This document shows, piece by piece, positions 200 to 60,705 of a stretch of DNA of 64,000 bases (the stretch's first letter is position 1; each line of letters opens with the position of its first letter). The notes below the pieces were generated by a model. That model was not told the DNA's origin, did no database searches, and saw nothing but the letters and a program-made list of their open reading frames with translations. The DNA comes from Octopus bimaculoides (Eukaryota), in the NCBI RefSeq assembly GCF_001194135.2, contig NC_068990.1, positions 72,613,465 to 72,677,464 on the forward strand, in the 5' to 3' direction. Both the position numbers and the translations under genes were made by a program.

Positions 200-1109
200 T
201 TGACATTACAATCCATTTATCCACGGTTACATTCATGATATACATACATGCTTACAAAAGTGGAAATTGTTTCCATTTTCCTGAGTAGCAACTTAAAATG
301 ATGTTTTGTTCACATATAGAACTATAGCCAACATTGGAATTTACTTTGGGATAAGGGGGCAATCAACATTAACGAGTGATTAAGAATTTAGGATAAAGGG
401 TGAAATCATGAAATTAATTCAGTACAATTTTTTTCATTTGTATTTTTTGCGATTTTGCTTTTAAAGTATACAGTTATCTAGGTCAAGAAATGTCATAGTC
501 AATTAGAAATCTTGTCATTAGAAACATAAAACAAATCAAGAATAAAAATTAAAATAAAAAAAAGCAGAACTACAGTTATTTTTTTATATAGAGAGTGTAA
601 ATGAAGGGAGACAATTCAAGTTCAATATCTAGTGAGTCCTAAAGGAAGAGGTAAAAAAAAAGTGGGGGTGGGTGTAGGTGGTAGGTGTAGCACATTTTCC
701 ACAGATTACAATATGTACATGATATCAACTACAAAAGAAGGGATTAACAAGCAGTGCTCAAAAATGTAAGCCACAGAAAAAAGTACTATTACACTTCCTT
801 GTAACACAGGTGATAAAATTTTAACCTACATGTGAGAATTTTTAACTAACATATATAAATCAATAAGTATGAAGGTATAGAAAAAAAAAAAGTCAGTAAT
901 TCTCTATACATGTCTATATATTATTTCATGTCTTACAAAAATCTTTACATCATGTTTTTTTTTTTTTTTTTTAAATTACCATTTTCAGAGTACATGTTTG
1001 TTTTGTCATGCACCAAAATACTTAGATTTTAAAACAAGTTTGGTTCAGAACACTCAACGCAGCAGTAGAGGTTCCATCTTTCTTTACATAATATATATGT
1101 ATATATATA

Positions 1110-1177
<68 letters not shown>

Positions 1178-3507
1178 AATATATATATATACATATAGAT
1201 GCACACACACATATATATATACACATGTATATATACAAATACACATTCACATACATACATATATTTATATACATACATGTATATAATTTTATAATTTTTA
1301 TTCTGAGCAAATAGAGGAGAAAATATAATCACTATCAAGACTTAAAAGAAATCACATGATAAAATGAAAGAATGAGGGCTTCAGCAGCACTCATATACTT
1401 AAAATAGAACGAAAAAATTATGTATTATCTCAGTGTATTATATGTGTATACTTGTGCACACACATAATACATATATACATACACACTTGTGAGTACATAT
1501 ACAAATATACATGACCACATCAAGTGATTTTTTTTATTGGAGAGGAGAATGTTTAATAATTGTTAACTACAAAATTATGAAATTATATGTTCATGTATAT
1601 ACATTACACCAAAGTAACAATGAGGAAGGATCACATATTTTGAAAAAGAGGAATTGAAATTAAAATTCCCATGTCTTCTTCATATTGAGATATACAAAAT
1701 TCTTTAGCATTCATTTGTTATTATCATACAGATAATCTAAATGTCAGAAAAGAAGTTTGCTCTTTTTTTTCTTTTTTTTTTTTAAGTAGAACTGATTTTG
1801 GATGGAAAAATCAATCCATCTATGATTTCATATCTAAGGGATTTAAATTTTGTTTTCCTTTGGTACAAAGAAAAGAATTTCTACACAGGTGCCATCTCAC
1901 ACAGTTCTGCCACCTCACACTGGTTCGAGATTGTTGTCATCTGCCGTTATATTCATGCAGAACGTTAAATTTATAAAAAAAAAAGAAAGAAAGAAATCTG
2001 GGACATTTTGTGCCAAAATATTTGAGTGAAAATTAACAGTCAATAAAATCAAATTATACTTAATTTGAAAGCTCTCTGACAGCCACCTAGCAAATTCTAA
2101 TGATTTCTAGCTTTATTTTACAAAAGTAAATTTGATTATTATTAAAAATGTGAAACTTAATATAAAACAATTTAAAATAAGGGCGAAAAATTAAATCTCT
2201 CCATCAATTTACATTCAAAAAATTTACAAAATAAACTGAAATAAAATAAAAGGAAAAAAAATACACAGAATGGAAACTTCTCTTCATTAATGATTGAACA
2301 TAAAAGTATAAGTACTTCATATATACCTTCATGCTCCAACAATTGTTTCCATAAATGAGGTAGAACAAAAATGAATATAGATACAGGTCATCTTGTTAGT
2401 CAGGCTATTAATAACAATGGATGGAGAGAGAATGAGAAGGGGAAGAGAGAGGGGGTGGTGGTGAGTGTTGAATTAGAAATGAAAAAGAGAGCAATTTTAA
2501 ATAGCCTCTCTTATCTATATTTAGTTTTGCGCAAACATCAATAAAAGCAATGCATCAATGGCAAATATTGAGTCTGTGATTTAAATTTTGTTTGTTGTTG
2601 TGTATGTGTGTGTATGTTTTTAAAGTTAAAAGTTCTGAAGAAAGCTGATAAAACGGTGAGCATAATCTAATTAGAAACCCACTTTCTAATATGACACTAG
2701 GCAGATAAAAGATTATTCTGTATTACTGTATTATAAAGATATTAAAATATATAACAAATATTCTGATATGACAAAAGAAAAAAAAACACATAAGAGACTA
2801 ATAGTGAATGGAGTTATTCTGTAGATAAATTCTATTCACCATACAGAGAGTGTCTTTTAGTCATAAAACTGTGTGTAAATGTATGCAAGTATGTAAGTTA
2901 TGTATGTGATGAACTAGAATCGAAATATGTATAAACAAACATAAAATCGTAGCAAAAACATATGTACTGACATTATTCAAATATAATGTTATAAACTATC
3001 TGATATTCAATCATATAGGATGCCATTATTAAATTATTTCAAGATAACAGATGGATTTCTTTGTCTTTCCAATTAGGTTTTAAATACAAACAGCTTAGGA
3101 TAAATAGTTTATATGCTATGAAATAAGAATTAATCAAAAACAAGTATAAAACATGTGCAATTTTGTGTGTTTAAGTCAAACAAAGCAATATGTCATTAAT
3201 CTCCTTTTATAAACATATTTATGGATATTGCATGAGAAAAGCAAGAAAAAAAGAGCAATTAAATGAAAAGCCCTACACTAGAAGTGGGTTTTTTTTCTTC
3301 TAATTCTAGTTATGAATGGTATGTTTCAACAATGAAAGAAAATTTGAAAGTGATAACATCCAACAAAAAAATGTGTTCTTGTAGATATGTTATAAAGGAG
3401 CTTGTCATAAAAAGATGTTTCAATAATGATGTCTCTAGCGTGATACATGGAAATTAAATATGTCCATCATAGATTTAGTGCAATCAACAAGATCAGCAAA
3501 TTTACAT
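200..3507 (-). other. Candidate long terminal 3'UTR exon
   Basis: Acceptor ttttttatttaatatttctttggcatttccag|ATG at 3507; about 3.3 kb with no recognisable SINE/LINE and many minus-strand U-tracts; no long ORF; distal end not defined. Confidence 0.35.
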
Positions 3508-3872
3508 CTGGAAATGCCAAAGAAATATTAAATAAAAAAAAAACCTAATTCTATATTTCATTTAATGCCATTTTCCTATAATTGTTTCATTTTGCTTTTG
3601 GCTTGACTGTGACAGTATCAAGTAGATAAATTGCTAAATAAAAACCCCATTTTCTTAGTTCACTCTACTTAAATGAAATAGTTAAGTTGTAGTTTCAAGT
3701 GTAACACAGCCTTGTTATTATTTTCATAGTGTAATGTCTTGAAATTGATAGATTATTCAAGATCCACTTTTCCATACTAATTTTAGTAGGAAAATTTTGG
3801 ATATATGGATGCTCTTTGCCCATGCGTATAAGAACAGAATATTTGAGTAGACTGGGCTTACATAAAGACGTG

Positions 3873-59193: not shown

Positions 59194-59223
59194 AGAGAAT
59201 AGAGGGCTTCTGTGATCATATAG

Positions 59224-60702
59224 TCAACACAGGTAGCTTTCCTTGAAAGGTTGATAATTTGGTATAGTGTGAGGGTACTTGACATGCCAAACAATGTGGA
59301 ACGTGAACTCAATTCGGTCTTGGCAGTGCTTGTTACAGGACGGACATCGAAACGGATCTTCGTCAATCGGTGAGTGCAGGCTCTGATGGAGGTGGAACAT
59401 TGTGTAGTCATGAAAGTAAATCCCGCAGTGGAAACACTGATGGAAGCCAACATCCGTAGTTGGGGTAGCTGAGGTAGTTGTCACATCACGTTTTTCCTCA
59501 GATTCTGAATCTAAGCTTGGAGTTTTAGACGTTTGGATAAAGCTACCTCTCTTCCATCGATAATGCTCGGATGTAGCCGTTTCGCATACCATGCTTGCAG
59601 TTGAAACAGTTGCAGTAGACTTGTTCATGCTCAAGTCCATAACGCTGTCCTCAGATGTACGGGTCAAAGTTGACAAAGGTGGTGCCATCTGGGCAGACTG
59701 AGGTAGATCTGTTAATGGAGTGTTTGAGGGCGATAGGATTTGTGATGCAGATGAGGTAGAGGGGTATTGCTTTTCTTTATCTTTCTGACTCTCTGCTGAT
59801 GATGTTCTTAGAAGTTCTGAAGAGCTCATATCAGCCACCGAAGTCAATGATGGTGGAGAATGGATAACGCTACGTGATGGCATGGCAATTGTGTACAAGC
59901 TTGGAGGTGTACTCGTATGAACATAAGTCGTTGTTTCTGCAGTATGACAATTGCCGCTACTAGTGGCCATGCTTTTGTGAACCCCATGTTGCTGGTCTTC
60001 CATTTCAGATGGTGTCGTTGGTGGAGTCACTTGTTCCAGTTTAATTGAACTCAGAGAAGAAATAGCCTGAAGGTGCTGTTGCTGTTCATTTTGCATATCT
60101 CTTTGGTGCGGTTGCTGTGATGACCTTTCAAGTTGTTGAGGCGGTGGCTTACCTTGTAGCAGTCCAGCTTGTTGCTGTGACTGATCATGGAGTGTTAAAT
60201 TTGATGGAACTGCTGGTCCTGAGGTTGTTGTCGTTGTGTTGTGCATAAGAGTCTCATAAGTCAATGCTTGTTGCAGCAAAGCTCTCTGTTGCATGGCAAA
60301 AGCCTGGTAGGCAGCCAAGTTGACCTGGGGAGTTGGTCGTGCTGGATTTCGGTATCCATAAAGTTTACCCCGCATGTGTACATTACGCTCGTGACGGCGT
60401 AGATCGTTGCTCTGTGTAAAGCATCTGTGACAAATCTTACATTTGTAAGGTCTCTCACCAGTATGCACCCTCTCGTGCACCTTGAGATTAGATGACCACA
60501 GGAACGACTTTCCACATGTTTGGCAAACGTACGGGCGATCCGCACGATGGAGCTGTTCATGCTTTCGCAGTGTTGCCACCTCGCGGAACGAGCGCTGGCA
60601 CAGTTCACAACGATATGGCCGAGCACTGCTGGAGGATACCGCGGCGGGAGGTGGGTATTTAATCCCGCTATTTGCTTCGTTACCACCACTGGAATCCTCC
60701 AT
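59224..60702 (-). CDS. C2H2 zinc-finger transcription factor, 492 aa: three N-terminal fingers plus a C-terminal Ikaros/Hunchback-type dimerisation finger pair
   Basis: Uninterrupted ORF. The first 34 aa of the track ORF are the intron polypyrimidine tract (…ttttttgttttgcag|AGG ATG G), so the likely start is the ATG at 60702 (A at -3, G at +4). TGA stop at 59226-59224. Fingers: YRCELC..HEQLH, YVCQTC..HERVH-TGERP, YKCKIC..HERNVH; C-terminal CFHC..F.D..M...H...H and DPFRCPSC...QDRIEF..HIVWH. Q-rich and S/T/P-rich spacer. An additional upstream coding exon cannot be excluded (the exon begins in frame with AGG). Confidence 0.95.
   Translation of the reverse strand: MEDSSGGNEANSGIKYPPPAAVSSSSARPYRCELCQRSFREVATLRKHEQLHRADRPYVCQTCGKSFLWSSNLKVHERVHTGERPYKCKICHRCFTQSNDLRRHERNVHMRGKLYGYRNPARPTPQVNLAAYQAFAMQQRALLQQALTYETLMHNTTTTTSGPAVPSNLTLHDQSQQQAGLLQGKPPPQQLERSSQQPHQRDMQNEQQQHLQAISSLSSIKLEQVTPPTTPSEMEDQQHGVHKSMATSSGNCHTAETTTYVHTSTPPSLYTIAMPSRSVIHSPPSLTSVADMSSSELLRTSSAESQKDKEKQYPSTSSASQILSPSNTPLTDLPQSAQMAPPLSTLTRTSEDSVMDLSMNKSTATVSTASMVCETATSEHYRWKRGSFIQTSKTPSLDSESEEKRDVTTTSATPTTDVGFHQCFHCGIYFHDYTMFHLHQSLHSPIDEDPFRCPSCNKHCQDRIEFTFHIVWHVKYPHTIPNYQPFKESYLC
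59284..59445 (-). other. Ikaros/Hunchback-type C-terminal dimerisation zinc-finger pair (DZF)
   Basis: FHQCFHCGIYFHDYTMFHLHQSLH-SPIDEDPF-RCPSCNKHCQDRIEFTFHIVWH matches, by eye, the Ikaros pattern C..C...F.D..M...H...H..DPF.C..C....QDR.EF..HI. Confidence 0.85.
60376..60615 (-). other. Array of three DNA-binding-type C2H2 fingers
   Basis: Three CxxC-x12-HxxxH/HxxxxH units with RADRPY and TGERPY linkers. Confidence 0.95.
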
Positions 60703-60705
60703 CCT

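Follow-up and report, generated by a model that had tools for sequence, protein, structure and literature searches.

A zinc-finger gene of Octopus bimaculoides with a distant 3'UTR exon and predicted let-7 sites that recur in mollusc relatives

The gene and its distant 3'UTR exon

We analysed a 64,000-nt stretch of the Octopus bimaculoides genome (RefSeq assembly GCF_001194135.2, contig NC_068990.1, forward-strand positions 72,613,465 to 72,677,464), which is referred to below as the window and numbered from its first base. The window holds most of one gene, which lies on the minus strand and encodes a predicted zinc-finger transcription factor. Its mature mRNA carries four matches to the microRNA (miRNA) let-7, the last of them in an exon of the 3' untranslated region (3'UTR) that follows a very long intron. 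The open reading frame (ORF) at 60804-59224 (minus) was the sole long one in the window not owed to N runs or simple repeats; the remaining long ORFs each crossed N gaps or simple repeats and were rejected. The features of the gene were as follows.

59191 to 60705, minus: main exon, with 3 nt of 5'UTR, the entire 492-aa coding sequence (CDS) and the first 33 nt of the 3'UTR
59224 to 60702, minus: CDS, from the ATG at 60702-60700 to the TGA at 59226-59224, 492 aa without interruption
60376 to 60609, minus: three N-terminal Krueppel-type C2H2 fingers, aa 32-109 (Pfam zf-C2H2 and zf-H2C2_2, regular expression), the presumed DNA-binding domain
59284 to 59436, minus: C-terminal C2H2 finger pair, aa 423-473 of 492, with an Ikaros-type dimerisation-finger (DZF) motif (hhalign)
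12576 to 59190, minus: 3'UTR intron, GT...AG, nominally 46,615 nt, with six assembly gaps; absent from RNA contigs L011 and L002-L010
12502 to 12575, minus: verified part of the distal 3'UTR exon, matched by L011 and L002; the 3' end of the exon lies beyond it
43523-44025, 54237-54363 and 56811-56828: N gaps in the intron, flanked by GT, CT, AT or AG dinucleotide microsatellites

Read from the minus strand, the main exon is entered through the acceptor ttttgcag/AGG at 60705 and left through the donor cag/gtaact, with 59191 as its final base (the slash marks the splice border). The exon was collinear with the RNA contigs L011 (99% identity) and L002 (85%), the alignments ending exactly at 59191. 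The 5' exon of the Sepia transcript had no match within the window, and at least one further 5' exon of the octopus gene is outside the window or unrecognised in it. Neither the window product nor a 90-aa ORF within the distal exon (11971-12243) was on record in exact-protein look-ups. The CDS exon is free of N runs, and so are the initial 898 nt of the distal exon. Six N gaps lie inside the intron and three more downstream of 11678, and the gap at 10854-11677 restricts the reading of the transcript's 3' end. Because of these positions, the ORF is continuous, the intron length of 46,615 nt is nominal only, and part of the far 3' region is unread.

The splice from 59191 to 12575, which the initial annotation of this DNA had proposed, was observed in RNA contigs of octopus and cuttlefish. 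The acceptor reads ttccag/GTGACC, with 12575 as the first exon base, and the junction sits 33 nt past the stop codon. L011, the contig encoding the fragment P0003, was 99% identical to window 60306-59191 and then 100% identical to 12575-12502; its positions 1114-1190 equal window 12578-12502 (77 nt at 100%). The left part of the contigs encoding P0002 aligned to the window as far as 59191, and these contigs read ...TGACTATATGATCACAGGAGCCCTCTATTCTCTCAG/GTGACTTACTACCTCAGTAATGG... across the junction. The right part of L002 matched window 12578-12515 (minus) with 90.6% identity (E 1e-19). L011 came from SRR3401912, an octopus meta-transcriptome (PMC11662614). L002-L010 came from several runs, and the traced ones, which include SRR31864757 and the juvenile RNA-seq runs SRR19578103 and SRR19578114 (PMC9538352), were all from Sepia esculenta. 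Since RNA contigs of both animals carry the junction, the predicted splice exists in octopus and in cuttlefish. The two lineages diverged roughly 250-300 million years ago. The donor at 59191 was used by 11 of 11 contigs; the donors at 59147 and 59125, also put forward initially, were used by no transcript.

The Argonauta genome keeps the donor context CTCTCAG/GTAATT. No similarity to the distal exon was found within 10 kb downstream in Argonauta, whose distal exon lies more than 10 kb off, or in the downstream sequence of Haliotis, Pecten, L013 and L014. Between octopus and Sepia, a block of about 60 nt in the distal exon was more conserved (90.6%) than the CDS (85%). Within it, the approximately 45 nt right after the let-7 site (AGTAATGGCTGATTCCTGGAGGAGTTGTCAGAACATTCTCAGTGGC; window 12515-12559, L002 1745-1792) were about 90% identical between octopus and cuttlefish, above the CDS. 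This conservation suggests a further regulatory element, and no miRNA seed among those checked by eye fitted the 45-nt block.

Alternative or comparable 3' structures were seen in other molluscs. The S. esculenta contig L001 (1581-2008) has an alternative 3'UTR exon on the same donor, which begins GAAGTGTTTCTATACC and contains AATAAA motifs; it had no let-7 seed match in 394 nt and no counterpart in the window by sensitive blastn. Strong donors were predicted after the stop codon in Haliotis (AAGTG/GTAAGT at 20 nt, L017 21817-21845) and in Pecten (CACT/GTAAGT at 16 nt, L016 15844-15865), and in L014 (1503-1540) the motif TCTCTCAG, which ends the exon in cephalopods, stands about 35 nt past the stop. 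On these sequences, a 3'UTR intron just past the stop may be ancestral in molluscs.

The let-7 sites in octopus and other molluscs

The let-7 8-mer target, CTACCTCA, was counted on both strands of the window. It occurred seven times against 1.6 expected, with 6/7 copies on the minus strand, and the only 8-mers found three times in the CDS were CTACCTCA and two overlapping polyglutamine 8-mers. Three copies in the ORF and one in the distal exon are on the mature mRNA:

59752 to 59759, minus: site 1, codons S-T-S, frame 1; 8-mer in Argonauta, Sepia and L011
59699 to 59706, minus: site 2, codons L-P-Q, frame 0; kept in Argonauta and Sepia, with an aligned LPQ 8-mer in Haliotis and Pecten
59470 to 59477, minus: site 3, codons T-T-S of RDVTTTS, frame 1; 8-mer in Argonauta and Haliotis, 7mer-m8 in Sepia
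12560 to 12575, minus: extended site, which pairs with let-7 nt 1-13 by Watson-Crick pairs and with nt 14-16 by G:U pairs and starts at the first base of the distal exon

The three CDS 8-mers and the 13-nt complement at 12560 named in the initial annotation were thus found again. Argonauta and L011 retain each of the three ORF 8-mers, and Sepia has two 8-mers and one 7mer-m8. The distal exon opens with GTGACCTACTACCTCA, and the 13-nt let-7 complement in it is ACCTACTACCTCA at 12572-12560. The predicted duplex energy of the extended site was -23.6 kcal/mol, compared with -14.6 to -18.9 kcal/mol for the ORF sites. Sepia keeps the extended site with one C>U change, by which the pair becomes G:U. 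The Rfam search found no let-7 hairpin and no RNA family at all in the window; Ovu-Let-7 has been reported in Octopus vulgaris (PMC9699675).

Once the four supported sites were removed, the leftover 8-mers at 2356, 51586 and 28227 were in line with the chance expectation of 1.6. The 8-mer at 2356, which the initial annotation had included in the system, stands alone, 10 kb beyond the verified acceptor. The copy at 51586 was rejected as intronic and lying in a tRNA- or short interspersed element (SINE)-like context: at window 51586-51615 (minus) it is preceded by GGGAATCGAACTC, resembling an antisense tRNA T-arm, and its surroundings are probably a piece of a tRNA-derived SINE.

Coding DNA was recovered for five further relatives, with the following sites.

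Haliotis rubra genome (L017): three ORF 8-mers and two extra 7-mers; three sense 8-mers within 7 kb downstream, none antisense
Pecten maximus genome (L016): four ORF 8-mers and no extra 7-mers; a tandem array downstream
L014, with a Mercenaria/Mactra/Mya-like tail: three ORF 8-mers and one extra 7-mer; one site in the 3'UTR
L013, more divergent: two ORF 8-mers and one extra 7-mer; none in 2.5 kb of 3'UTR
L018, a second scallop-like transcript: two ORF 8-mers and one extra 7-mer; the contig stops 18 nt past the stop codon and is too short there to inform on the scallop 3'UTR

All seven orthologous CDSs carried two to four ORF 8-mers, compared with 0.08-0.15 expected (P <2e-4 to 6e-3); the expectation was taken from synonymous-codon shuffles within each gene, with protein and codon usage held fixed. 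Without preselection of the motif, CTACCTCA was the commonest 8-mer when the counts from five lineages were added up (15 copies, found in 5/5), and the next-ranked 8-mers, TCTACCTC and TACCTCAG, were overlaps of CTACCTCA itself. Antisense copies of CTACCTCA in the family CDSs numbered 0. Fourteen other conserved miRNA seeds, including those of miR-100 and miR-125, showed no enrichment, at 0-1 occurrences per CDS. Opposite let-7 nt 1 (t1), 15/19 family seed matches had an A. The whole Haliotis locus had six 8-mers against 0.9 expected, all on the sense strand and in or downstream of the CDS, and the neighbouring genes in L016 and L017 had no let-7 8-mer.

The motif falls in all three frames, encoding S-T-S, L-P-Q or Y-L. 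An STS site after the finger domain is common to Haliotis, Pecten and L014, the LPQ site to cephalopods, Haliotis and Pecten, the TTS site of RDVTTTS to cephalopods and Haliotis, and a C-terminal SYL site to Pecten and L013; other site positions are lineage-specific. The codons of the LPQ and TTS sites are identical between classes. Because about 60% of the codons for identical residues differ between classes, the identical codons at shared sites are not neutral leftovers. Collectively, the recurrence speaks for selection that acts on the sense RNA to retain a let-7 seed match while individual sites turn over, a pattern expected of a dosage-sensitive miRNA target. The let-7 targeting first proposed for the octopus gene thereby gained strong comparative support, as sites were kept or recurred in every relative tested in a strand- and seed-specific manner. 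The gene looks like an old let-7 target kept in cephalopods, abalone, scallops and other molluscs.

The Pecten array (L016 15812-17110; GCA_902652985.1 LR736855.1) consists of a 62-nt unit in about 21 copies with 94% match. The unit duplicates the closing ~30 nt of the CDS together with the stop codon and ~20 nt from the beginning of the 3'UTR, including the GTAAGT donor. The array holds 16 let-7 8-mers, and an intact donor remains in units 1, 5, 6 and 20 alone. Depending on the donor chosen, the mRNA could gain from 0 to about 19 extra let-7 sites, or the entire array could be intronic. The spacing between the S-T-S and L-P-Q sites was 53 nt in cephalopods (window 59699-59759) and in L014 (613-673) and 55 nt in Pecten (L016 15376-15438); the L014 pair stands at a different place in the protein alignment.

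The protein family

The closest relatives of the octopus product were P0001 from Argonauta hians (95% amino acid identity), P0002 (513 aa, found in many runs; 89%) and the fragment P0003 (99%), and other mollusc proteins showed about 50% full-length identity. Full-length matches were from molluscs only and had inconsistent automatic names, with no vertebrate IKZF among them; P0004 (oyster) and P0021 (Pomacea) had no gene-product record. A HMMER scan with a profile of the C-terminal 107 positions against 1.84 billion representatives returned a first tier of 18-19 clusters at E below ~1e-30, then a gap, then many proteins with a finger pair at the extreme C-terminus. The named first-tier members were all molluscs, and the sampled named members of the second tier were other mollusc zinc-finger proteins with a similar terminal pair.

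To compare the C-terminal pair with Ikaros, we used an Ikaros-family fragment, P0280. It was one of four short fragments returned by a search with an Ikaros C-terminal peptide, which gave no named IKZF1 or Hunchback. The hhalign comparison of the family profile A2 with P0280 gave a probability of 98%, an E value of 1.5e-13 and 42% identity over 53 columns. The controls, the family's own N-terminal fingers and a ZNF771 protein, gave E values of 1.6e-6 and 8.7e-6 with 27-29% identity over 37-38 columns. Since P0280 scored far beyond these generic C2H2 controls, the terminal pair is specifically Ikaros-like. PDB searches with the pair, as single sequence and as profile, returned generic C2H2 matches only and were uninformative on Ikaros affinity. 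In the PDB search with the N-terminal fingers, KZFP, PRDM9 and CTCF matched far better than Helios.

The family of Hunchback/Ikaros-like (HIL) factors is defined by an N-terminal or central finger cluster with a C-terminal pair (10.1101/2022.06.20.496913), and at the sequence level the octopus protein has both an N-terminal C2H2 cluster and an Ikaros-like pair at the extreme C-terminus. Ikaros proper and Hunchback have four DNA-binding fingers (10.1101/2024.11.11.623063), to which Hunchback adds more fingers and boxes; the octopus protein has three N-terminal fingers and departs from the IKZF1-4/Hunchback pattern in this respect. The initial label "Ikaros/Hunchback-type" holds for the architecture and the C-terminal pair; the three presumed DNA-binding fingers are generic, and an orthology to Ikaros, Pegasus or Hunchback would go beyond this evidence. 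By its sequence the protein would represent a new subfamily in the broad HIL group, restricted to molluscs as far as seen, rather than "an Ikaros" or "a Hunchback". At least two further mollusc families end in a similar finger pair (P0140, P0145, P0151, P0134 and P0135; P0144 and P0136). One, with an Argonauta protein among its members, ends in ...RLEF.AHLVWH; the other, carrying KCEHCRIIF..., looks by eye closer to the vertebrate Ikaros finger pair.

Proposed let-7 control and its alternatives

The explanation that we consider best, and likely to be correct, is a mollusc transcription factor gene with three plus two fingers, a 46.6-kb 3'UTR intron and four selected let-7 sites through which let-7 would repress it. 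AGO loaded with let-7 would bind the four sites and lower the stability or translation of the mRNA. The factor would be made while let-7 is low and shut off as let-7 rises late in development, and its presence would thereby be limited to low-let-7 stages or cells. The extended site, which pairs let-7 nt 9-13 too, might act more strongly than a seed site does, or might even be cleaved. Which 3' exon is used may tune let-7 sensitivity, as in the Sepia isoform that leaves from the same donor and lacks the UTR site. The exon junction complex (EJC)-dependent decay rule of 50-55 nt was derived from mammals, not molluscs; at a distance of just 33 nt from the stop codon, the junction would be expected to escape this decay. 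A timing or neural-progenitor role would follow by analogy with the nematode genes hbl-1 and ztf-16.

Several points weigh against this explanation. Repression by let-7 is itself a prediction, and miRNA sites in ORFs are usually weaker than those in 3'UTRs. The pairing was computed against the canonical 22-nt let-7, on the assumption that the cephalopod sequence is canonical beyond the seed. Homologous sites across lineages are non-independent observations, and the species of P0033 has 2.5 kb of 3'UTR without a let-7 seed match.

We considered whether the transcript structure itself could be read differently. The junction 59191/12575 might be an assembly artefact, or the distal exon might belong to a different gene, given that Logan contigs are automatic assemblies and that six scaffold gaps separate the two exons. 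However, the junction was found in two species and at least 10 independent runs with canonical GT-AG borders, the exons share strand and are in the correct order, and the conserved 60-nt block is located right at the acceptor. The two sides of the joint have only some 6 nt in common, which makes a k-mer assembly chimera implausible, and we regard an artefact or a foreign exon as extremely improbable. A longer 3'UTR, with further splices to about 4612, 4520 and 3507 and inclusion of the 8-mer at 2356, had also been suggested; these motifs are present, the transcript's 3' end was not reached, and the gap at 10854-11677 hides part of the region. Acceptor-like motifs are common here, however: 1-12575 contains 18 of them, about one every 700 nt, and those proposed at 4612, ~4520-4538 and 3507 account for three. 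On the minus strand of the whole window they number 123, as is ordinary for AT-rich sequence. The segments at 4612, 4520 and 3507 showed no similarity to relatives, nor did the Sepia alternative exon, and the residual 8-mers match chance. In addition, AATAAA signals at 12193, 12183 and 12134 lie 382-441 nt past the acceptor, near the median octopus 3'UTR of 350-380 nt (PMC9699675). The longer model is therefore quite unlikely. As a guess, the distal exon would be ~400-450 nt long and end by these AATAAA signals, near the median octopus 3'UTR; no contig reaches its end.

Other alternatives accept the transcript and question what the motif does. CTACCTCA might be kept for a reason other than let-7, as a protein motif, an exonic splicing enhancer, an RNA-binding-protein site or a DNA element. 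Some sites do lie in conserved peptides (RDVTTTS and the C-terminal ESYL), and let-7 binding is predicted from sequence. On the other side, the motif encodes different amino acids in three frames, survives or reappears in poorly conserved and differently aligned regions, is in excess over synonymous shuffles with the protein fixed, and is also present in non-coding 3'UTR. Its sense-strand exclusivity speaks against a DNA element, its preferred flank is the t1 A recognised by AGO, and the octopus UTR site prolongs the match to 13 nt of let-7. Together these features leave a non-let-7 function with little probability. A more serious alternative is that let-7 does bind but only fine-tunes a broadly expressed factor, and that neither a temporal nor a neural switch exists. 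In general, sites in ORFs have mild effects, and the transcript was present in whole juvenile cuttlefish, at a stage when let-7 is expected to be already on. In C. elegans, mutating the predicted let-7 site of ztf-16 had no effect (10.1101/2022.06.20.496913). Against this, three to five sites per mRNA are kept across mollusc classes, including the extended site, which suggests substantial dosage control, and bulk whole-animal RNA-seq is uninformative on the cell-level overlap of transcript and let-7. We hold mere fine-tuning to be possible, if the less probable outcome.

The nearest known systems are nematode genes. C. elegans hbl-1 (Hunchback-like) is an early-stage timing factor repressed by let-7-family miRNAs through its 3'UTR (10.1101/2024.11.11.623063). 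The octopus gene resembles it as a C2H2 factor of the HIL group with C-terminal paired fingers and several let-7-family sites on the mRNA. The two differ in that hbl-1 possesses nine fingers (four for DNA binding) and sites in the 3'UTR, whereas the octopus gene has 3+2 fingers and mostly ORF sites, with one beyond a 46-kb intron; moreover, the timing function of hbl-1 is known, whereas the octopus gene is known here by its sequence. C. elegans ztf-16, a HIL heterochronic gene downstream of let-7 whose expression is up in let-7 mutants (10.1101/2022.06.20.496913), shares the architecture of a finger cluster with a C-terminal pair. It has one predicted let-7 site, whose mutation was ineffective, and its regulation is thought to be indirect, in contrast to the many selected sites of the mollusc family.

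It is conceivable, though we would not favour it, that the mollusc gene is the counterpart of the nematode let-7 to hbl-1/ztf-16 link and that direct multi-site let-7 control of a HIL factor is an ancient protostome, perhaps bilaterian, timing module. If so, the mollusc version would be written mostly into the ORF, with the let-7 dose set by the choice of 3' exon or donor, as in the Sepia isoform and in the 21-unit Pecten repeat with its 16 sites and four retained donors. The findings bear in this way on the ancestry of the nematode link. Conservation across phyla is known for only a few let-7 targets, and our literature searches found none characterised in molluscs and no description of this mollusc transcription factor family or of such a mollusc let-7 target. 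What was already known is let-7 acting on a Hunchback-like factor, and ORF let-7 sites as in Dicer. What is new is the family, the phylum-wide recurrence of sites that sit mostly inside the ORF, and an extended site that opens an exon lying past a 46-kb 3'UTR intron. As let-7 sites are maintained or rebuilt in cephalopods, gastropods and bivalves, the family offers a starting point for the study of developmental timing in Lophotrochozoa and an unusually clear example of selection on miRNA sites within an ORF. A 3'UTR annotation that ends in the stop-codon exon can overlook the strongest site, which here lies past the 46-kb intron.

Other let-7 targets share single aspects with the mollusc gene. 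In 2008 Forman et al. reportedly described let-7 sites within the coding sequence of Dicer that are functional and conserved, in a paper whose title about 200 indexed articles cite. Dicer is thus a precedent for such sites within an ORF, in another gene and lineage; the mollusc sites differ in recurring phylum-wide in one transcription factor family and in being joined by an extended 3'UTR site. lin-41/TRIM71 likewise has several let-7 sites and has remained a let-7 target across great evolutionary distances, but it encodes an RNA-binding or E3-ligase protein of unrelated sequence and has its sites in the 3'UTR. Regulation of IKZF genes by let-7 via sites in the ORF is not known to us, and none was found. 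Vertebrate IKZF1-5 have the same finger-pair spacing as the mollusc family and share the residues C.HC...F.D..M...H...H...PF.C..C....DR.EF..H, but the N-terminal fingers of the octopus protein are generic. Pegasus (IKZF5) also has 3+2 fingers, and one source labels a clam homologue "Pegasus".

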